From: Setoptus koraiensis | Lineage: Eukaryota; Animalia; Arthropoda | Direction: 5' to 3' | Assembly (NCBI GenBank): GCA_048013815.1 | Contig: CM106585.1 | Location: 12,524,001 to 12,588,000 of the forward strand | Length of the DNA: 64,000 nt | Part shown: in pieces, positions 19,152 to 32,500 of the stretch | Position numbering within the stretch: position 1 is the first letter of the stretch | How the letters are laid out: the number at the start of each line of letters is the position of its first letter | Program-made: the position numbers and the translations under genes | The notes under the pieces: model-generated | What the model was told of the DNA's origin: nothing | The model's database searches: none | What the model saw: the letters and a program-made list of their open reading frames with translations, nothing else

Positions 19152-20972
19152 CTAGTTCAGTCGATTTAATATAAAAGTGCTGAAACTCTTGCTTTCCAAT
19201 AACACTTCGAGTTTTGTCTTCTTGTCTAGGCCTACTCTAAAGGGAACTGGGTGCTGATTGGCGTTTATAACCACTTGAACTATATAGTTATCCGGTGTGA
19301 GGAAAGCTGTTTCATGCAAGTCAAACATATTCGGCGCGGATAGTAATTTTGATTTCAATCTTATAGAACCTGGGGCTATGTACCGACTGAAGTGTCCGAT
19401 AGCATAGAACATGGGATTCCGATAAAATGTACCGTTTTGTTCGTCTACCAAAATAGCACAATCAGCTAAATTCGAGAAATCATAGTTGGAGAAACGAATG
19501 ATAATTCATGTCATTGCAAAGATCTGTATGATGGTCCTCATCGAGCATGCAGTGATGTCATTTTATTCACCTGGATAATGATTGGCGTAACTTGGTCCTC
19601 CCCACAAGTCAAATGCCATGTTGAAATCGACCCAGCCTACTGACCCATATTGAAGGTTCTGCGTAATGTTATATAGACCAAAAATGTTGAATTCAGACAG
19701 ATTGGTTTATTTTTGGAGAATAAAGTTTGAATTCTTTTGGTTTGTTGTTATTGAGTTTAGTCTTACTTTAGTGATTTCGATTGCATAGTCTTGCGCATAT
19801 CGCCAGTTCCCCAATTTTATGTGATCATTGTGCATTTTTGATTGACTAGCCAATAGCATCTTGTCGGGATATCGCTTGGTTAAATAAATAAGATTGTCGT
19901 AAGGGGCAGGCTGTTCATTTTTATAGGCAATTCCAGCAATCATGTTGGCGGAGGTTTGATTTTTGAAAAGAATATCCGCCCAATGCGGGATGAACTTCCG
20001 CTGATCGTCCAGTGCCAACAGTTTGACATTGTCCTTCAACATGGGACCCAAATAACCAACCACAAAATCTCTAACTTCTTCTGGCGTCATTGTCATTGAA
20101 CTAGGCTGAGTTTCGTTGTTCGCTGTACTTTTAGGCGGCGTCATTGAATTCTCGCCAAGAACCAATGACCAAATGTTCAAGCCTGCCTGCTTGTATGCCA
20201 ATAGAAAATTGTTCAAGTATTCGGCATAACTTTTCATACTATCCTCATTCAATTTACCTCCCCTCAGATCTGAATTTGTCTTGAATTTGACCGGCGCTGT
20301 TGTAGGACTGGCCAACAACTTCAACCTGTTCCTTGAACGACCGGCAGCCTCTAATGCCTCTAATATGATCGGTATTCTATAGTCGTTGTCATAGATGCTC
20401 AGGTCAACCTGTGAACCTCCTTCCGAGTCTAAAGCATAGTTGACAATTGAATATTCATTAGAGCCTATAGGTATCCGTATCAGATTCAATCTAATGCCTT
20501 CGGAGCTGTCAAAATAATTTTGTATCAGTTTGAGTCGTATGTCACCTGGCAAGTGATCAATATTGATGCAAGATGAATCTGTCAATGTTGAACCAAATCC
20601 AAGAATTCTTTGATATTTTTTATTGGTATCGATGAATGATGTAACATTTGTATGGGACTCTTCATAGTAGAACTCATCCGTATTGATGCCTTGATGATTA
20701 TATATCTTGAATCTGTCACCTTTTTGAGTTGAGACTATCTGTACGACTTTGTTCGGAGTAGTAGGCCATTCTACTAATCCAGCATCTGGAATTCTATCAA
20801 ATATTGATTCACAATTAGTCGCGCTACATTTTGATACAAAACTACCATCTACTATGTCTTGATTACAATCAGAAACCGCTGATTGCACCGTGCGGACGAT
20901 ATACAGTAGCAAGAAAGTTAAAATCATAGATAATACTTGAGGATACCAAACAAAACTTCTCTTCTGGTCCAT
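19152..20972 (-). CDS. GBA1: Glucosylceramidase-family (GH30) protein, 3 exons (20972-19768, 19658-19571, 19465-19152); catalytic Glu residues appear substituted
   Basis: YQRILGFGSTLTDSS, RIPIGSNEYS, LKLLASP, LLALDDQR, GWVDFNMAFDLWGGP, FYRNPMFYAIGHFSRY. N-terminal hydrophobic signal; all introns GT-AG and in phase. Confidence 0.9.
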
Positions 20973-21192
20973 ATATTGAAGGATAGAAGCGAAACGTTGT
21001 TTTATTGTTCATATCTTAAAAAGCTTTAACACTCCATTGGATAGGAAACTTTTATTAGCCTCGTCAAGAAATTGAACACCGTCAGCCATAATTGACTAAA
21101 TCAATTCCGACCGAAGTTAGGAAAAAATGTAATACAAGTTGAAAGACACGAACAAACGCAGATCGGCATGAGTCAACGAAAAATTTTTCGGA

Positions 21193-21903
21193 TCACTCTC
21201 TCTTCTCGTTGTTCATTTTATTTTTTATTAACTTTGTTACTGCAACAGCAAACATGCTAAAGCCGGCCACAGAGTAGACAGTTGCCCTAAGCAAGGCTTC
21301 TCTGGCTAGTGCTGAACCGGCCTCGTACACGGAGGGGGCAACGTTTGATTTCTTGAGTTTATTCAGAGTCTTAGAGAAACCGAATAACATAGAGCCACCA
21401 GCTAGCGTAACGAAGACAAAACTTGTTGCAGCCGAATTAATTGATACAACTTGATTGCCATTAGATGATGTTGAGATGCTTGAGTTACTAGTACCTGTCG
21501 CCTGCGAAGGTGACGGAGGAAGCTCCCACGGAGTATCTTGTTGAATAATGGTCCTACCCCATGGCTCTGTCGAGAATAGATCCTCAAATGGATTGCGTTT
21601 TGGCGAATCACTCTGTTGATTTGTTGACGATTCTGACATATTGTTATTTTGTGGCTGTCGTGATGACGATGTTAAATGGTTAGAATTATCACTATCTCTA
21701 TTGTTGTGATTATTATTGTCTAATAAATTGTGTTCTGGAACGGTGTCGTCCAATGTGGATTCATTATTGGCCTTCTGATGTGACGAGCCACCAGGTTGGT
21801 TGTTAACTGTCATAGTTATGCTTCCTGGCATAGAGTTGTCCGTTGGTTGTGTATTTTTGTCAATATAGTTAGTTGCATCCGTCGGGTTATTGCTGTCGCT
21901 CAT
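21193..21903 (-). CDS. Chimera A: GW182 N-terminus (21903-21425, includes Ago-binding motif I) fused in frame to a TMEM242-like C-terminus (21424-21193)
   Basis: Aa ~16-160 are near-identical to the GW182 ORF at 29519 (last 212 nt identical to 29750-29961). The remainder TLAGGSMLFGFSKTL..KK...EAGSALAREALLRATVYS matches the TMEM242/DUF1358 pattern and the paralogue at 25262. Confidence 0.8.
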   Translation of the reverse strand: MSDSNNPTDATNYIDKNTQPTDNSMPGSITMTVNNQPGGSSHQKANNESTLDDTVPEHNLLDNNNHNNRDSDNSNHLTSSSRQPQNNNMSESSTNQQSDSPKRNPFEDLFSTEPWGRTIIQQDTPWELPPSPSQATGTSNSSISTSSNGNQVVSINSAATSFVFVTLAGGSMLFGFSKTLNKLKKSNVAPSVYEAGSALAREALLRATVYSVAGFSMFAVAVTKLIKNKMNNEKRE

Positions 21904-22497
21904 GATGTTTGCAAAGGTTTACTAATTGAAAAATTATGATTCTGCCTTAATTGTGTTCGCCGTTTGCTAGTTGGTCGAGGCAGATTAATAATAATAATAA
22001 TTGTTATGAATACTATTTGTTAATAATAATATATAATCTGTTTGCCTGTGAGAATGATCACATAGATTCACGCGGAATGGCTGGCATGGCGTGAACACTA
22101 TAGTGCACCACTATAGTATAGGCTCGCTCGCTCGCTCAATCAATGAATTTGAATTGGGCAGCGCTCACAACTAGTTGCTTGTGTGTGACACTGACCAAGT
22201 TATATAATAATTATTTATGTCTCAGTCGTCTCTCTCGCTATTTCTCTCGTTAATGTGCTGCTTACCTTGACCATCAACAACGACTGAAACGACTCACCAG
22301 TAACAGGCTAGCGTTCTTTTCGCGCTCATTCCACTAGAGAAACTCACTGACCACTATGCGCCACTCACAAGGTAACCTAGGGAGTAGATGCACACGACGC
22401 GAGGTGTATGTCTGACAATTGATAATGAGAATATTACAAATATATCATGATGCCCATTGATTGTGGAAATTGATTGGATTGATGTAATCACTTGTAG

Positions 22498-22866
22498 TCA
22501 TTCGAAGTATAAAAGATTTATGATAATCAACAAGAGTATAACATTGATGAGTATTGAAAGAGTCTGGCTTCGTTTCGACGAATGGCAAGTGGCCATCAAC
22601 TCGTGTATCTGGGAGCCACTGTTCAATTGTTGTTGTTTAGACAATGATCGCTTTCTCTTGTTTGTTGTTTGGCCGCAACTGGAAACAGTGGCTAGTTGGG
22701 CGTCTAGTCTGATTTGAGAGGCCAATCTCACACATGTTTGTTGTTTGTCATCATTGGATTGTTGTTGCCAGATAGACTCGAACTCATTGGCCGCCATCTT
22801 TTCTACGTGTCCTGGCACGCGTTGAGCAATTAATAGAAACTTGTCCTCTTGTTCGTGCTCTTCCAT
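22498..22866 (-). CDS. Hypothetical orphan ORF (122 aa)
   Basis: ATG start, KRKR basic patch, hydrophobic C-terminal stretch; no recognised family. Confidence 0.3.
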   Translation of the reverse strand: MEEHEQEDKFLLIAQRVPGHVEKMAANEFESIWQQQSNDDKQQTCVRLASQIRLDAQLATVSSCGQTTNKRKRSLSKQQQLNSGSQIHELMATCHSSKRSQTLSILINVILLLIIINLLYFE

Positions 22867-22903
22867 GTTTTATTGTATGCATATTTTTTAACACTTTTTT
22901 GCC

Positions 22904-23203
22904 ATGGAAAGTGACAACCAACAAAATGACAACTTAAGAATGAACCCATCATCGCCAGCCTCAGTGTCACCAGGTGAACAAATTATTAGGCTACGGGCTC
23001 GTAAAAAGATTATTAGGACATCACCCAGGAAGCATGTAAGTATCAAGGATGAATTTCAACAAATCAAGCAACTTCTACAATCACCTGTAACAACCAAATT
23101 TACTAACTTCATTGGGGACCAAGCTCACGCTCACACGAAGAATGGTGAAACCAAAAGAGACCAACAACAAGAATCTGGGCACGCTACTAAGAACTCCGAC
23201 TAA
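22904..23203 (+). CDS. Hypothetical orphan ORF (99 aa), basic and disordered
   Basis: ATG in good context (GCCATGG), coding-like composition; no recognised family. Confidence 0.35.
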   Translation: MESDNQQNDNLRMNPSSPASVSPGEQIIRLRARKKIIRTSPRKHVSIKDEFQQIKQLLQSPVTTKFTNFIGDQAHAHTKNGETKRDQQQESGHATKNSD

Positions 23204-23250
23204 AATATTACGTCTACGTCGGAACACAAGCATCAGAAGGGTCAAAGAAA

Positions 23251-23616
23251 TCATCTCTTGGAGATAACTTTTTGAATACTAATACTATTAATTTCGAACC
23301 CAACAGAGCCACCAGCACAACTGGAAAGAATTTTTTTCACGTGTTCCTTGACGTCATCGGGTATGTTTGGATTGTTGTCCATAATTTCTGGGTTAGCAGC
23401 GCACGAAACTACCTGCCGAAAGAAGGTTAGTGGATGTTGTTGCATAGCATGACAATCGCCAATGTTTGCTCGAATTACACTCTTGAATGTTTTTTCCGCT
23501 CCGTTCTGGAGCTCTTTCGCCAACTCCACGGCTCTGATGACCAATTGTCCCCGAACAGCATATTCCAGATTGCGAACATTTTGATTGATATTGTCAGGAC
23601 ATAATATTGGTGCCAT
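23251..23616 (-). pseudogene. GPT: Alanine aminotransferase 5' fragment, truncated after GGSVG
   Basis: NINQNVRNLEYAVRGQLVIRA, VIRANIGDCHAMQQHPLTFFRQV, NIPDDVKEHVKKILSSCAGGSVG, then unrelated sequence and a stop. No downstream ALT exons seen. Confidence 0.75.
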
Positions 23617-24425
23617 TTTTGAGGATGAGATTAATTGCACTTGAATTTATACCCGGACTATTTTTTATCTTTCCAAATCTAATTTCCAAATGCAATTTGA
23701 GTTTCTGGGGCAGTCACTGAATAGAATTTGAGATTATGATTAATGTTGAGATTACACTCCAATGAATGTTGCTAAAGACGGATATTAGAATAGAGTCGCA
23801 ATTTTTTAGTTTTCTGCCCACAACAGTCATAATAAATAAGCCCTTAGAAAGGAGAGTTCGAGCTTTTTGTAACATTCACAAGAGAAAAACATTCTACTAA
23901 TGTATTTTAATATTCCTCAAAAAGAGGACAATAAAATCCTCATCATATCAATCTGCAAAGACTACATTGGACCATCAAGACTTCGTGATTCCTACAACTT
24001 TTGTTACAGCATACCAGGTACGTTAGGACGCAACATTACGTCAGAACCACTTACACTTCATAGAAGGCGCGTCGAGTCATTTTCAAAATGTGACGGAGCA
24101 TGACAGCAAACATGTGATATGCTCTCACAAGTTAGTTGTTCTAGAAATTACACCTTTCATGTATGGTTATAATGCATTGTAAGTGTGAATTCATTGCAAT
24201 AAAGAATTTCTCCTAAATATATTCTATCGATCATCTGTGGCCGGCCTAATACAAGTTCTAACTCTTCAGTACAAAGTCCGTACTATGTCATTGGCTTTGC
24301 TTACCAGAAACCATACTAGATTAATTAAATTAGTCGATCTGACCAGACACAACACAAACAACGGATTATATTTGAACAAGTTAAATCATAATAGATTCGT
24401 CTCCTTGAACAACAAATCAAACAAG

Positions 24426-25261: not shown

Positions 25262-25867
25262 TCATCTTTCACTAGAGCTGCCATCTACCGGTTCACTTCG
25301 ACCCGTCAAAAAAAGGTTCTCTAGCATCTTGAGGTCTCTTTCGTTGTTTAGTTTACTTTGAGAATTGAAATTGTCTATTAATTTTTGACCAAATAATTTG
25401 TATGTTGCAAAAGCAAACATGCTAAAGCCGGCCACAGAGTAGACAGTTGCCCTAAGCAAGGCTTTTCTGGCTAGTGCTGAACCGGCCTCATACAAGACAG
25501 CGGCCTCCGAGGGGGGAACATTGGGATCTAGAGATTTCTTGAATTTGTTAACAGTTCTGGAAAAACCAAATAAAATAGAACCGCCAGCTAGCGTGCCAAA
25601 ATATATTATCTTCAAACAACTGGCTGAAACATCTGATATATTGTTATTGTGTGGCTGTTGTGCTGACGATGTTAAATGGTTAGAATTATCACTATCTCTA
25701 TTGTTGTGATTATTATTGTCTAATAAATTTTGTTCTGGAACGGTGGCGTCCAACGTGGATTCATTATTGGCCCTCTGAAGTGACGAGATACCAGGTTGGT
25801 TGTTAACTGTCATAGTTACGCCAGGAAGCCTAGAGTTGTCCGTTGGTTGTGTATTTCTGGTAGGCAT
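25262..25867 (-). CDS. Chimera B: GW182 N-terminal ~78 aa (25867-25633) fused in frame to a TMEM242-like protein (25632-25262)
   Basis: MPTRNTQPTDNS...NNNISD is paralogous to the GW182 start at 29519. It continues FGTLAGGSILFGFSRTVNKFKK...EAGSALARKALLRATVYSVAGFSMFAFATYKLFG, the TMEM242/DUF1358 signature. Confidence 0.82.
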   Translation of the reverse strand: MPTRNTQPTDNSRLPGVTMTVNNQPGISSLQRANNESTLDATVPEQNLLDNNNHNNRDSDNSNHLTSSAQQPHNNNISDVSASCLKIIYFGTLAGGSILFGFSRTVNKFKKSLDPNVPPSEAAVLYEAGSALARKALLRATVYSVAGFSMFAFATYKLFGQKLIDNFNSQSKLNNERDLKMLENLFLTGRSEPVDGSSSER

Positions 25868-25990
25868 ACGTATATTTAAATATATAAATACACAAAAACT
25901 CACTCAATATAGCATGCAGCGAGAGTTCTTTCACTGTGAGTGTTTGTGTCCATTTTTGTCATGTACACATTCTCACACCAGCCTTGGAGG

Positions 25991-26036
25991 TAGGGGGACG
26001 CAGCGCGGTCGCGCTTTTCATCGTTGCGCGCTGCTA
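25991..26036. mobile_element. 46-bp internally deleted MITE relic flanked by a perfect 8-bp TSD (CTTGGAGG)
   Basis: CTTGGAGG[TAGGGGGACGCAGCGCG...CGCGCTGCTA]CTTGGAGG. Same insertion site as the 276-bp element at 28938 in the paralogous arm. Confidence 0.75.
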
Positions 26037-26180
26037 CTTGGAGGTGATGTGAGAAGCGCACTCGGCACTGGTGCGCCGAGTGTGCGCTACGTCCACCCCA
26101 GTTCAGACAATTGAAAGCCCAGACGCACCATACAACATTCTGCATGGTAGAAATGTGATGAGAGACACAACCAGCCTGTA

Positions 26181-26558
26181 TAGGGTGTCTGAAGCTAATA
26201 GTCAAGTTCTCTACTGATTATGCTACGCTGCCTTCCACGGTGCATTTTATGCACACAAACACTGCGCGCTGCTTCCAATGTGCACCGATGTTTTATGGAA
26301 TATCCAACAGAGGCGCTGCTCACATTTTGTTCAACAAACAATTCAGTGCAGCACCACTCTCGCGGACCTTTTGTAAACTAATGTAGGTGCATCAGAAAAA
26401 CCTGTGCTTGTTTAAATCGCACAGTTCGTGCGTTAGCAAGAATTTGAGCGTGTTTCGCGCCACAGTATAACAGAGGCACATAATACCACTTTACACTCTG
26501 TGAACTAACGTGCTGCACATGTGCTTTTGGACCTTGACTATTTGCTCCTGACACCTTA
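26181..26558. mobile_element. ~378-bp TIR element (MITE) present only in the left arm
   Basis: Ends TAGGGTGTCTGAAGC / revcomp TAAGGTGTCAGGAGC (12/15 match). The paralogous empty site reads (revcomp of 28372-28400) CCAGCCTGTA-CCATAATC. Possible TA/TG TSD, so Tc1/mariner-like, but superfamily uncertain. Confidence 0.65.
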
Positions 26559-26717
26559 TGCCATAATCATGTGTGTGCTCTGAAACTGATGCGCCAATGC
26601 AACGCATCGATTTTGTTTTTGTGGCTGGCCTGGCGTGAATACTTCAGTAGATGTCAAAGCTTATTTTAGTTTTTGGCTTAATTCAATCACATTCGCGAAC
26701 ACTTCAATTGTTACAAA

Positions 26718-27997: not shown

Positions 27998-28460
27998 TGT
28001 TATTCGTTCAACTGAATATGATGGCCAAGTTATCCGTGGACAATTTGGAGAGCAATTGGTTAGACAATTTATTAATACTTGAAATACTTGAAATACCTGA
28101 AATGACAAGGAGAGTTTAGAAACCTGTAGCGTGAGATCGATTGAGCAATCGAAAATCAAATCAACAAGAAAAAGAGAAGAAAAACGCAACATTTGTCGAG
28201 ACACCTCAGCTTTAATTGGTGCATTTTTAGGCTGACGCTAACACCCCTCGCGTCTTTTTCTTGAACTACGGCCAAAGGCATCGGCAGATTTCCACACGGT
28301 ACACTATAGTGTTCACGCCAGGCCAGCCACACAAAAAGTTCCATGCGTTGCATTGGCGCATCAGTTACAGAGCAGACACATGATTATGGTACAGGCTGGT
28401 TCGCATTGCTACAACATACAGAATGTTGTATGGTGTGTCCGGGCTTTCAATTGTCTGAGC

Positions 28461-28549
28461 TAAAGTGGACGCACATTATCGCACAAAGCGCACACCGTAT
28501 GATGTGCGCTTTCCGTCGTTGTGCGGCAGTGTGCGCCGCGTCCACTCCA
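28461..28549. mobile_element. Degenerate short MITE/hairpin of the TAGGGTGGACGC family
   Basis: AGTGGACGC...GCGTCCACT termini with internal AAAGCGCAC/GTGCGCTTT palindromic pair; no clear TSD. Confidence 0.5.
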
Positions 28550-28610
28550 CTGTGGACTATAGCAGCCAATCAGAGTTTATAAAGTAGCAAGCTGCAGCAC
28601 GCACACACAG

Positions 28611-28904
28611 TACGGATATCTGTGACGGATATCCGCACCGTTTAGAACGGCTGGCCCAGCCCACATCCGTCCGCGGATGATCCGTGCCCGCGCTGAAACA
28701 CACAAATCCGTCCGTGGATTATCCATGGATATTTTGATATACGTGGATATTTCTCTCGTTAACGGATATTCACGGATTTTCGTGGAATTATGAGATTCTG
28801 CAATCCGTCCACGGATTATCCGAGCCAAATTTTTTTCGAAGCGATCCGCACCGAATCCGTACGGTGCGGATATCCGCGCCCACGGATATCCAATCGCATC
28901 TCCA
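28611..28904. mobile_element. hAT-like MITE (294 bp) with CGGATATCC subterminal repeats and 8-bp TSD ACACACAG
   Basis: ACACACAG at 28603-28610 and 28905-28912. Imperfect ~30-bp inverted ends (GGATATC...CGGATATCCGCACCGT) and many internal ATCCG/CGGAT motifs. Confidence 0.75.
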
Positions 28905-28937
28905 ACACACAGTAAAGCGAAAACCATCACCTCCGAG

Positions 28938-29213
28938 TAGGATGGACGCAGCGCACACTCAGCGCACAGGGCCCTGTGCGCTTTCGTGTGATCTCGGCGC
29001 TTTCGGTGTACGCCGAGATTGGTGAAATTGCCCGTGCGGTCAAAAAGGTGGGCAGGGCCCGCCATGCAGTTTCGATGCATGTGTGAGCTCCCGCACTGGC
29101 TGCGGAGGGCGTGTCTGGCGTACGCCGAAAGCGCACAGATGCCCCGAAAAGCGCCGAGAGCGCACGAAAGCGCACAAGGCCCTGTGCGCTGAGTGTGCGC
29201 TGCGTCCACCCTA
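28938..29213. mobile_element. hAT-like MITE (276 bp) with ~70-bp TIRs and 8-bp TSD CCTCCGAG/CCTCCAAG
   Basis: Left TAGGATGGACGCAGCGCACACTCAGCGCACAGGGCCCTGTGCGCTTTCGTG matches the reverse complement of the right end. TAGGG-type terminus and 8-bp TSD are typical of hAT elements. Confidence 0.85.
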
Positions 29214-29446
29214 CCTCCAAGGCTGGTGTGAGAATGTGTACATGACAAAAATGGACACAAACACTCACAGTGAAAGAACTCTCGCTGCATGCTATATTGA
29301 GTGAGTTTTTGTGTAGAATTTTCTCCTTTTCCTCTCGATTTCCCTCCTAAATAAGCTATCATATCCAGAAACAACAACGATAATCGTATTATTATCATCA
29401 GCAGCACCTATCTTGCTATCTATATCACTTTACATTTAGATATATT

Positions 29447-29515
29447 CTTTATATATATATATATATACATATATACATATTTAAATATATATATATATAT
29501 ATATATTTAAATATA
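29447..29515. repeat. Interrupted (TA)n microsatellite immediately upstream of the GW182 ATG
   Basis: TATATATATATATATACATATATACATATTTAAATATATATATATATATATATTTAAATATA. Confidence 0.85.
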
Positions 29516-29518
29516 CGT

Positions 29519-32500
29519 ATGCCTACCAAAAATACACAACCAATGGACAACTCTATGCAAGGAAGCATAACTATGACAGTTAACAACCAACCTGATAGCT
29601 CGTCACTTCAGACGGCCAATAATGAATCTACATTGGACGCCACAGATCCAGAACAAAATTTATTAGACAATAATAATCACAACAATGGAGATAGTGATAA
29701 TTCTAACCATTTAACATCGTCATCACAACAGCCACAAAATAACAATATATCAGAATCGTCAACAAATCAACAGAGTGATTCGCCAAAACGCAATCCATTT
29801 GAGGATCTATTCTCGACAGAGCCATGGGGTAGGACCATTATTCAACAAGATACTCCGTGGGAGCTTCCTCCGTCACCTTCGCAGGCGACAGGTACTAGTA
29901 ACTCAAGCATCTCAACATCATCTAATGGCAATCAAGTTGTATCAATTAATTCGGCTGCAACCAGTGTTGCCGCTGTGATAGCTTCCAACAATTTAACTTC
30001 TAATGGTTGTGAGGTGTGGAAAAATTCTGGTAATGACAATAACAATCAAAATTTGAACCATCATAATAACCATATGCACCATAATAATAGTTCAAGCTCG
30101 TCCGTTGTTACTTTAGACCCATTGACACGTTTTACTTCTATATTAGACTATGATTTCTCAGCTCAGCAACCACCAAATCATGCCGCCCAAGGTAGACTCA
30201 ATCAACAATCAGCACATCATTTGCATGCATCTATGATACGACAACCCCATGCTCCCAATAACATGGCGAATTTCGCACAAGCACAAATGAAACCTCGCCC
30301 TGCTACCGCATGGAATGGCGCAGCATCTTCGATATTATCCTCAACGACTATCAGTGATGATATAGACCCTAATAAAATGTGGTCAGGCCTACCTGATGGA
30401 GGTGACCAACCACAAAATCACCTTATAGCTTCAGGACACCATCTCAATAATGGTTTAAATTCTGGTAACAACAATCTGCGTCAACCGCAACCTACAAGCA
30501 ACATACCCTCATCTTGGGTTAGGCCAGACAAAACGAATTTGGTCTCAAATGCTGGTTCGATGGGAGTGAATCAGAATACCATGTGGGACAGTACGGGACC
30601 TCACAATAATAAGCAATGGATGAGCTCTAACCCGTCTGGTGGTTGGACAGAGGCTGACAGCCTAGTAGGCAATGCTGCTTCAATGATTGCTGCCATGTCA
30701 GCAGGTATGAACACTAACAATCTAAGACCATCTGGTATGCCAATGCGGCCCACTAACACATTAGTTCAAGGACAAGACTGTGCTTTTGCATCAAATTCCT
30801 GGGCATCAGCTGTGAACAAATCTCCTCCAGCAGGAAACTACGATTCCTCCGGGGGTGGCATCGGTACCTGGTCACCAGTCTCTAGTGGTGGCAATAAACC
30901 TGGATCTAGATGGGACGCAGATGGATCTGAGAACGGAAAAGGTGATATGGGAAGATTTGATGATGGCACGGCTATTTGGGGAAGTCCTGCACAAACTAAA
31001 GTTAGTGGTGTTGATTGGGTCGAGAAAACTGGCGATCCCAATGGTGGTAGTAACGACAAAACCCGCTCGATGGGAAATAGTCACAACACACAAGCATTTC
31101 GTCCCCAGCAACCTTCATCATCTGCTAGTCTACTTATGTCATCTGCTACTAGTCCTTCAAATCAGCAGGTTCGCAGCCAGCAAGTTCTGAAACAACCCTT
31201 AATATCTCAAAATGTAAGTAAATCAATAGTGGAACTGCTCACTCATGTTGAAGTTGAGAATATTCGATCAATTCATTCTAATGACAAACTTTTCTATCTT
31301 GCCTTCTAGTTTGATCAAGTGCATCAACCATCCAATGCCCTATCAAGCCAACCATCAAATCAGCCAAATCGAATTCTCGGATTGTCGTCTAACGTTCCTT
31401 CCACACAGCAATTGAAGCATATGGTTCAACAGATCCAGATCGCGGTCCAAGCTGGACATCTCAATGCTCAGGTAAGTGGATTTTTGTCGCTTTTGAATTT
31501 AACGTGCACAAGTTCCCGAACTAATTTCTTTTATTCTTTCTTTTCACGATCCCTCTCATAGATACTAAATCAGCCTTTAGCACCTATAACATTGCAGCTC
31601 CTGTATCAACTGTTGCAACAAATCAAAGTTTTACACCAGCTGCAATTGCAAGCATCTCAACAGTACAATAAATCCGGCAATCATCCTGCGGCGTCAATAA
31701 ATGTACAAATAACTAAGACCAAACAGACTATACTAAATTTACAAAATCAAATTGCTGCTCAACAGGCAGTATTTTTGAAGCAAACTCAGACACACAACAT
31801 TTCATCGCAACAACCATCGATACCAACCATTGCTGCTGGTGGCGTTGGTGGTATCGGTGGGCCAACCCTACCTCCAGGTATCTCTCAATCAGGTGATAAC
31901 TTCCGGACAAGTACTGCAAGTGATATTCACAATCAAGTTATTATGAATAATGCATCAGGCCTTGACGGTTTTGGTACAAATGGCCTAACAAATAATTTGA
32001 ATAACATGAGCATTGGTGGAGGTGCCATGGCCAACTCGCGCTTCGATCAACCATGGAGAGCACCTGCTACTCAACAGCAAACCATTGCTTCTTCATCATT
32101 CTCTAACAATAATTTAATTAACAATTCAAACAATATGCAAAAATCAATTCTGAATAGTGGTGGAAATGGTGGTAATAACTCTCTAGGCAACTCACCCTTC
32201 GTAAGTGTGCCCCCAAGTAATGAATTTGCACGAGCACCGGGACCAGGATCGTCTATGATGGATAGCAAACCATTCGCCATGGGAAATCGTTCCTCTGCAT
32301 GGTCCGCATTCGGAGCAAGTGAATCAGAGCCTGAATGGCCAAACACAACAACTAGCGGAATCTCTGCAAACAACTCATCTCAGCGTAAGTATTAGAGAAA
32401 AGAATGGACCGTATGTCAACTTTATCTGCGAATATATTATGTTTAAATTTGTTTTGTACTATAACACCTTGATTTTACTTGCTTCTCATCATAGCACCGA

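Follow-up and report, generated by a model that had tools for sequence, protein, structure and literature searches.

The analysed window, a 64,000-nucleotide stretch of the Setoptus koraiensis genome (assembly GCA_048013815.1, contig CM106585.1, positions 12,524,001 to 12,588,000), contains an open reading frame (ORF), here called chimA, in which a fragment of a GW182-like gene is fused in frame to a paralogue of TMEM242 (DUF1358). We put the chances at about even that chimA is a real, young and lineage-specific chimeric gene, which arose by local rearrangement and is not a purpose-built Argonaute (Ago) adaptor. As expected of a young chimeric gene, two parent genes could be identified and the junction between their parts is in frame. 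A sister chimera, chimB, and the resident GW182-like gene are found in the same window. The TMEM242 copies in chimB and chimA are referred to as T1 and T2, respectively, and the positions of all features are collected in Table 1.

The ORF of chimA (21193-21903, reverse strand) starts with ATG, has no internal stops and encodes 236 aa; the remaining two frames across the same positions hold 12 and 26 stops. Its two parts meet at 21425/21424 (...GCTGCAAC|AAGTTTTG), where about 8 nt of microhomology (AGT.TTG.C) blur the boundary: both parents are similar for about 8 bases beyond 21425, and for this reason the GW182 match reaches 21417. In the single-sequence AlphaFold2 model, residues 1-156 are disordered and are followed by a helical hairpin (H157-185/H190-235).

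TMEM242, with its yeast relative AIM11 (both DUF1358), is a mitochondrial inner-membrane factor involved in ATP-synthase c-ring assembly. The Pfam profile of this family (PF07096) matches residues 163-233 of chimA with an E-value of 9.2e-6 and 26.0 bits, against a gathering score of 23.4, and the second Pfam signal on the hairpin is a weak, sub-threshold one (SLC25_like). Hydropathy marks two segments, at about 158-176 and 204-222, and the AlphaFold2 confidence score (predicted local distance difference test, pLDDT) of the helices 157-185 and 190-235 is about 70. TMEM242/AIM11 clusters were also among the best look-alikes of chimA in a feature-based protein atlas (scores 0.84-0.85, where scores below 0.9 count as a lead only), and all eight invariant DUF1358 columns of a 15-sequence alignment are retained in T2. 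Motifs conserved in the family are GF, LA..AL.R...Y, ALARKAL and YxLFGKKLI. T2 and T1 are old paralogues, with 79% identity at the nucleotide level. A Nei-Gojobori comparison of T2 with chimB over 76 codons gave a synonymous divergence (dS) of 0.55, a non-synonymous divergence (dN) of 0.20 and a ratio (omega) of 0.36, and the indels are in frame; these values suggest that T2 long evolved as a coding gene. A sequence-only reading of this DNA had described a stop-free 236-aa ORF, an in-frame junction at 21425/21424 and a TMEM242/DUF1358 tail with two hydrophobic segments, and the present results agree with it on each of these points.

The front part of chimA derives from GW182. Comparison of the window with itself showed that 21417-21859 recurs in inverted orientation at 29527-29969(+) (443 nt, 96% identity), and this places residues 17-160 of chimA in the first exon of the gene that starts at 29519(+). 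That exon encodes a Gly/Trp- and Asn-rich protein, and later exons of the gene match the Pfam GW182 M domain (PF12938; E-values of 9e-13 and 2e-6); in its tested ORFs Pfam detected none of UBA, RRM and Ago_hook. The GW182 origin of the first ~160 aa had been proposed in the sequence-only reading as well, and the peptide that it singled out, STEPWGRTIIQQDTPWELPPSP, is present in chimA with both of its tryptophans (W115 and W126). Neither an M domain nor PAM2 nor a silencing region is found in chimA, for which Pfam gives DUF1358 and the weak SLC25_like signal only. With this effector part missing, chimA is a GW182 fragment and not a GW182 protein.

The sequence-only reading had further held that this architecture has no known counterpart, and database searches are in line with this. 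A phmmer search of chimA against 1.84 billion representative proteins gave 16 matches at E ≤ 0.001, and no other protein combining the GW part and the TMEM242 part was found among these representatives. P0001 (594 aa), encoded by a relative, matches the N-terminal 172 residues with 83% identity, and 14 weaker matches each cover one part only: 12 small DUF1358-type proteins (93-172 aa; E-values from 2e-10 to 1e-5 for 11 of them) match the tail, and P0013 and P0015 match the GW-derived part alone. Exact-protein look-ups for chimA, chimB and a guessed junction-spanning contig product returned no record of these as called genes, and nothing was found either in a metagenome protein scan or in a scan with an exact 31-nt junction pattern. 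A sequence search of the PDB gave chance matches to ribosomal L36 only and left TNRC6 peptides unmatched, and a word-index homologue search returned zero scored matches for chimA and for the TMEM242 portion of chimB, although phmmer found homologues.

How the two parts may have come together is best seen from chimB. This gene has a complete TMEM242 body, with the conserved YKLFGQKLI motif and the C-terminal tail (Pfam DUF1358, E-value 1e-10), and its codon 3, in a protein that starts Met-Pro-Thr, is followed by a 228-bp piece of GW182 exon 1 (25632-25859). Once these 228 bp are removed, the sequence reads in frame as MPTVSASCLKIIYF..., like the native TMEM242 N-termini of P0002, P0004 and P0012. 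The tryptophan (Trp) block of chimA is absent from chimB. The left junction of the insert, ATGCCTAC|CA(A/G)AAAT, is identical in chimB and in the resident GW182-like gene (which reads ATGCCTAC|CAAAAAT), the blocks upstream of both are 85-100% identical, and the resulting inverted arms (25632-26643 and 28308-29754) flank TAF10 and an enoyl-CoA hydratase gene. The resident GW182-like gene has been re-headed, in that it no longer has its ancestral promoter and start and begins with a TMEM242-type front end (the upstream arm plus Met-Pro-Thr).

Two further details of these arms were recorded. Compared with chimA, the resident GW182 and the relative, chimB shows a 6-bp micro-inversion at 25822-25827 (CAGGAA to TTCCTG). 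The arm upstream of the resident gene is interrupted by a GC-rich palindromic insert at about 28480-29215 (arms 28937-29003 and 29148-29214) and by a (TA)n run at 29440-29510.

The front end missing from the resident gene was found at chimA, by comparison with an 8.4-kb contig of the relative (L001; about 89% identical over 5 kb). This contig encodes P0001 and holds GW182 exon 1 and, after it, an exon that encodes the GW182 M domain. Its positions 748-1285 match chimA 21954-21417 at 93%, and the matching part takes in the first 16 codons (MSDSNN...IDK) as well as 95 nt ahead of the ATG; a second upstream block (L001 135-266) matches 22071-21930 at 76%. For the resident GW182 the match to L001 begins only at 29527. 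On this evidence chimA now carries the ancestral GW182 promoter region, 5′ untranslated region (5′UTR) and start codon.

The two upstream blocks, which adjoin in front of chimA, are separated in L001 by about 480 bp (267-747); the relative could have a 5′UTR intron or an insertion here, or this genome could have lost the sequence by deletion. A 22-nt motif, GGTGCACTATAGTGTTCACGCC, lies at 22088-22109(-) and, with one mismatch, at 28298-28319(+), in the same gene-relative orientation upstream of chimA and of the GW182 arm. No chance match of this kind is expected; the motif may have been left behind by the rearrangement, or it may function as a promoter element.

The history of the GW-derived copies was read from the segment common to chimA and GW182 (D 1-443, numbered from its 5′ end and running from 21859 down to 21417 in chimA), with A standing for chimA, B for chimB, G for the resident GW182 and L for L001. 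Over D 1-228 the pairwise differences are A-G 14, A-B 20, B-G 20, A-L 21, B-L 27 and G-L 13. The four-point test on this interval supports ((A,B),(G,L)), where the internal branch measures 4 and the terminal branches 7 (A), 13 (B), 3 (G) and 10 (L), and at five sites of D the chimeric copies A and B are alike against G and L. This topology and the five sites point to a shared history of the GW copies of chimA and chimB. With 11 and 17 changes, the two chimeric copies evolve about 4- to 6-fold faster than the one in the GW182 body, which has 3.

The remainder of the segment behaves differently. Over the 212 bp of D 224-435 chimA and the resident GW182 (29750-29961) show no differences, where 13 would be expected from the neighbouring rate (Poisson P of about 2e-6) and where the adjacent 223 bp hold 14 differing sites; L001 and GW182 differ at 5 sites within the same 212 bp. 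Since identity is complete here and broken next to it, the simplest reading is that the Trp block of chimA, which lies in this tract, is a very recent gene-conversion import from GW182 and has not been kept by long selection. The simplest reading of the junction is likewise that chimA earlier had a chimB-like junction at D 228 and that conversion from GW182 made the present one; alternatively, the original junction was at D 435 and later conversion kept it identical with GW182. Under either scenario the Trp block would have no independent history in chimA from which selection could be read. A second, 84-bp tract (21241-21324), within T2, reflects gene conversion between the two TMEM242 paralogues. 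At 21300 and 21302 in this region a short contig of the DNA run X5 carries changes that turn ALAREAL into ALAKKAL (R201K, E202K), and it represents either another chimA allele or a third paralogue.

The order of events that we infer would comprise three steps. Firstly, a TMEM242 paralogue would have gained the first 228 bp of GW182 exon 1 in frame behind its own start codon, a state that chimB has kept. Secondly, an inversion of about 7.7 kb between the inverted GW182-exon copies, by non-allelic recombination between them or by staggered breaks, would have swapped the front ends reciprocally: the ancestral GW182 promoter, 5′UTR and start (MSDSNN...) would have come to stand ahead of T2, giving rise to chimA, and the GW182-like gene would have received its TMEM242-type front end. 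Thirdly, very recent conversion from GW182 would have lengthened the GW part of chimA by 212 bp, as far as the microhomology within T2, and the Trp block would have arrived with it. One reciprocal exchange would explain both the ancestral head of chimA and the chimB-like head of GW182. The un-inverted order would have been T2(-), upstream arm, hydratase gene, TAF10, other arm, T1(+), DJ-1, the gene at 23251-23640, the 122-aa ORF, and finally the ancestral promoter with GW182(+), so that T1 and T2 would have formed an inverted pair, with T1 about 4 kb upstream of GW182. A one-way duplication of the GW182 5′ end onto T2 was considered and rejected, as the ancestral promoter and start are found at chimA only and GW182 has a TMEM242-type front end; the reciprocal exchange is preferred because it requires fewer events.

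Expression of chimA, if it occurs, would start from the former GW182 promoter and yield a 236-aa protein with a TMEM242-type two-helix hairpin behind a disordered leader of 156 residues, and the hairpin would be expected in the mitochondrial inner membrane. The GW part would then supply a borrowed front end, consisting of promoter, start codon and disordered leader, with the Trp pair as a passenger. An AATAAA at 21051-21056, about 140 nt past the stop codon, is a plausible polyadenylation signal.

The presence of chimA in independent DNA was examined in X2, which behaves as a DNA run of the same species but bears a different organism label, sample and study code. X2 contains 91% of the sampled 31-mers of 20900-22300. 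Its 6.2-kb contig spans 20400-21276 with zero differences at 105x, depth at 21300 (in T2) is 113x with no listed difference, and depth over the 5′ region of chimA (21792-22192) is 91x. A 269-nt contig (21425-21693), also obtained from X5, has a depth of 236x in X2, as two identical copies collapsed into one, and the X2 contigs fork exactly at the junction position 21425, as predicted for a fork in the k-mer graph. X2 therefore supports the chimA junction, although none of the listed contigs bridges it by more than 30 nt.

We give only a slim chance to an assembly artefact, in which the two parts were wrongly joined at 21424/21425 or a false inversion arose through crossing inside the identical 212-443-nt inverted repeat. 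Inverted copies that are identical over 212 bp are the classic setting for mis-orientation, and the shortness of the contig bridges, together with alternative flanks at 22006 and 22122-22125 in X2 and X5, would be in keeping with such an error. However, every chimA-specific piece occurs in X2 at 91-113x, with the doubled depth of the shared tract, the fork at 21425, the recovered 31-mers and no depth hole. Moreover, a false inversion would leave the GW-T2 join intact, as this lies outside the repeat, and the copy that belongs to the GW182 body is the slow one (3 changes, compared with 11), which a correct assembly predicts.

Upstream of chimA, the interval from about 22125 to 23245, which includes the ORFs 22498-22866 (122 aa) and 22904-23203, has about twice the single-copy depth in X2 and X5 and many half-frequency variants, and its contigs continue, at 22122-22125 and at 23245-23295, into sequence outside the window; this suggests either a structural variant beside the chimA promoter or another, slightly diverged copy elsewhere. 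One X5 contig tracks chimA upstream to 22006 and then continues for 233 nt that are absent from the window and from L001, and another X5 contig (21780-22217) agrees with the window, so that the divergence may be a promoter-region polymorphism. The loose ends of the alternative contigs at 22006 and 22122-22125 were found neither in the window nor in L001.

Transcription could be followed in a single run with RNA from the locus, X7, which bears another organism label and behaves as RNA (a GT..AG joint 24667>24770 in DJ-1, and contigs that coincide with ORFs), but is shallow, with neighbouring genes at 2-9x. Its contigs cover chimB, DJ-1, the neighbouring 122-aa ORF and GW182. One of them (25273-25777, zero differences) bridges the chimB junction, and chimB is thus transcribed across its junction. 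The X7 contigs that fall on 21417-21654 belong to GW182, since one continues into GW182 and base 21637 has the GW182 state.

The main rival to a young chimeric gene, which we consider possible though doubtful, is that chimA is a decaying by-product: the leftover half of the rearrangement, unexpressed or with a useless product, in which the ORF has stayed open through its coding parents and through conversion from GW182 and chimB. Several observations weigh against a functional chimA and would fit such a relic. No chimA-specific RNA (21193-21416 and 21694-21960) was detected in the shallow X7, in which the 5′ part of GW182 itself is also unassembled. Derived states at outgroup-conserved positions number 10 in T2 of chimA against 1 in chimB: the Lys of ALARKAL, found in 12 of 13 outgroups, has become Glu, two conserved Tyr residues are gone, and the motif YxLFGKKLI is lost through a deletion that removes LFGKKLI. 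An in-frame TGA then ends chimA, and homology to the chimB tail carries on beyond it in the same frame. The substitutions specific to the GW part of chimA are 7 non-synonymous and 0 synonymous, which fits little or no constraint on this part. Together with the changes in T2 they fit relaxed constraint, and chimA may be decaying; T2 has become the faster, loosened copy, and chimB looks like the working TMEM242 gene at the locus. A separate point against the preferred reading is the long, polar and acidic leader, which has a net charge of -3 in residues 1-40 and is unlike a mitochondrial presequence. The conversion tracts of 212 bp and 84 bp would also keep much of the ORF free of mutations. As for the rearrangement itself, L001 stops 800 bp upstream of GW182 in a microsatellite, short of the region that would show the un-inverted gene order, and TMEM242 loci of other species (L002 and L003) have no neighbour genes in common with the window.

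On the other side, T2 has remained in frame across a dS of about 0.55, with in-frame indels only and the invariant DUF1358 columns kept, and it occurs in the independent sample X2 without a listed difference. A housekeeping-type promoter would have been inherited by chimA and an AATAAA signal is present, and at the depth of X7 the outcome for chimA is "not detected" and not "silent".

A more specific proposal, made in the sequence-only reading, was that chimA is a membrane-tethered Ago adaptor or decoy. In the Trp block, 10 residues separate W115 and W126, pLDDT is below 50 around both, and the block is conserved in P0001 of the relative and in the more distant homologue P0015. In TNRC6 the minimum for an Ago-binding site has been reported as two Trp at least 10 residues apart (PMC9262622), and in Drosophila residues 1-205 of dGW182 are both necessary and sufficient for AGO1 binding, while over-expressed N-terminal fragments of GW182 relieve microRNA (miRNA) repression and are thus dominant negative (PMC2965232). 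From the spacing of the tryptophans and the conservation of the block, the fragment could plausibly bind Ago on meeting it.

It is nevertheless improbable, in our view, that chimA is a membrane-anchored Ago-binding fragment of GW182 that tethers miRNA-loaded Ago, or acts as a natural dominant-negative decoy without a silencing domain. The first two Trp of the parent are kept with the spacing of the TNRC6 minimum, the region is predicted to be disordered like Ago-binding regions, and the findings on dGW182 and the conservation of the block speak for it as well. Against this, the block seems to be a very recent conversion import in which no selection is demonstrable, and the N-terminus of human TMEM242, an inner-membrane protein with both N- and C-termini in the matrix (PMC8020751), faces away from cytosolic Ago. 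Furthermore, no chimA transcript was detected in X7, and Pfam Ago_hook was unmatched both in chimA (E-values up to 1) and in the parental exon (E-values up to 0.1). The expressed sister chimB lacks the Trp block, which argues that the GW piece is a front end and not an Ago binder. Slimmer still are the odds of a fuller version in which chimA is expressed (perhaps in a tissue-restricted manner), the leader blocks mitochondrial entry, the hairpin anchors the fragment on a cytosol-facing membrane as a T6B-like decoy or tether, and repeated conversion from GW182 keeps the Trp block matched to the Ago pockets. Of the adaptor or decoy proposal, the architecture stands (a GW N-terminus with its Trp pair, fused in frame to a hairpin), but the tethering function is left unsupported by the recent import, the matrix topology, the RNA result and the missing Ago_hook match; that the parent is a GW182-like paralogue counts against it as well. 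The label "motif I", which the same reading gave to the Trp block, could not be verified, as Ago_hook was unmatched and a literature search yielded no motif I sequence.

Downstream of chimA, a glycosyl hydrolase family 30 (glucosylceramidase-like) gene at 19152-20972(-) starts about 220 bp beyond the stop codon (Pfam E-value 1e-49); X7 gave no RNA coverage on its examined part (20400-20972).

Table 1. Features of the chimA region, with positions in the window
Feature	Position	Strand	Remarks
Candidate polyadenylation signal AATAAA	21051..21056	-	read from sequence
chimA	21193..21903	-	intact chimeric ORF, 236 aa; stop codon counted in
T2, TMEM242/DUF1358 paralogue part	21193..21424	-	residues 161-236; two predicted helices; truncated by in-frame stop relative to chimB
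84-bp tract	21241..21324	-	second helix and ALAR(K/E)AL motif; 2 mismatches to chimB 25406-25489
GW182-derived coding part	21425..21903	-	residues 1-160; 21417-21859 paralogous to resident GW182 29527-29969
212-bp tract, D 224-435	21425..21636	-	100% identical to resident GW182 29750-29961; probable recent conversion tract with Trp block
Trp block FEDLFSTEPWGRTIIQQDTPWELPPSPSQA	21499..21588	-	residues 106-135; W115 and W126 with 10 residues between; also in P0001 and P0015
First 15 codons of chimA (MSDSNN...)	21860-21903	-	counterpart only in GW182 of the relative
Upstream region of chimA	21904..22109	-	21904-21954 and 21930-22071 homologous to upstream of GW182 of the relative
chimB, sister chimera	25262..25867	-	201 aa; full-length TMEM242 paralogue T1 with in-frame 228-bp insert of GW182 exon 1
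U1, upstream arm of chimB	25868..26643	-	inverted repeat with U2
U2, upstream arm of resident GW182	28308..29526	+	blocks 85-100% identical to U1; GC-rich palindromic insert; (TA)n run
First exon of resident GW182-like gene	29519..31309	+	596 codons; shared segment 29527-29969; start matches that of chimB, not that of GW182 of the relative

If the proposed origin holds, the locus would be a clean and datable case of new-gene making in a compact arthropod genome, in which the promoter and start codon of a microRNA-pathway gene moved onto a paralogue of a mitochondrial protein and vice versa, and conversion then shifted the fusion point. Transcription of the GW182-like gene would now depend on another promoter, with possible consequences for its regulation. 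Should the Ago reading be true instead, the laboratory GW182 decoys would have their first endogenous equivalent in chimA: a fragment that occurs naturally, is anchored in a membrane, binds Ago and links the miRNA-induced silencing complex to that membrane in a directly testable way.

Compared with known systems, chimA shares with TMEM242/AIM11 the predicted two-helix hairpin, a Pfam match above the gathering score and all eight invariant columns, but 160 GW182-derived residues stand in place of the native N-terminus, ALARKAL has Glu instead of its Lys, and YxLFGKKLI is lost with the C-terminal tail; its conserved positions change about 10 times faster than those of the TMEM242 part of chimB. 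Like the Ago-binding N-terminus of GW182/TNRC6, the front part is disordered and Ser/Asn/Thr-rich, has two Trp 10 residues apart and comes from exon 1 of a gene with an M domain. Unlike GW182/TNRC6 proteins, chimA has only 2 Trp and lacks the M domain, PAM2, the silencing region and an Ago_hook match, and its parent is a GW182-like paralogue. If the adaptor or decoy proposal were right, the only known model for the action of chimA would be the dominant-negative GW182 fragments and T6B-type peptides (PMC2965232), which bind Ago and likewise lack effector domains. Those laboratory products are soluble and engineered, whereas chimA is natural, carries a predicted membrane hairpin and is known from its sequence.

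Young chimeric genes at the breakpoints of inversions and duplications include jingwei and Sdic in Drosophila, and inverted duplications occur at inversion breakpoints. With these chimA has in common two parents nearby, an in-frame junction at a microhomology, what appear to be a captured promoter and first codons, and signs of ongoing conversion. It would differ from them in two respects: the exchange looks reciprocal, GW182 itself being re-headed with a TMEM242-type start, and later conversion would have shifted the junction of chimA within the shared segment, from D 228 to D 435.

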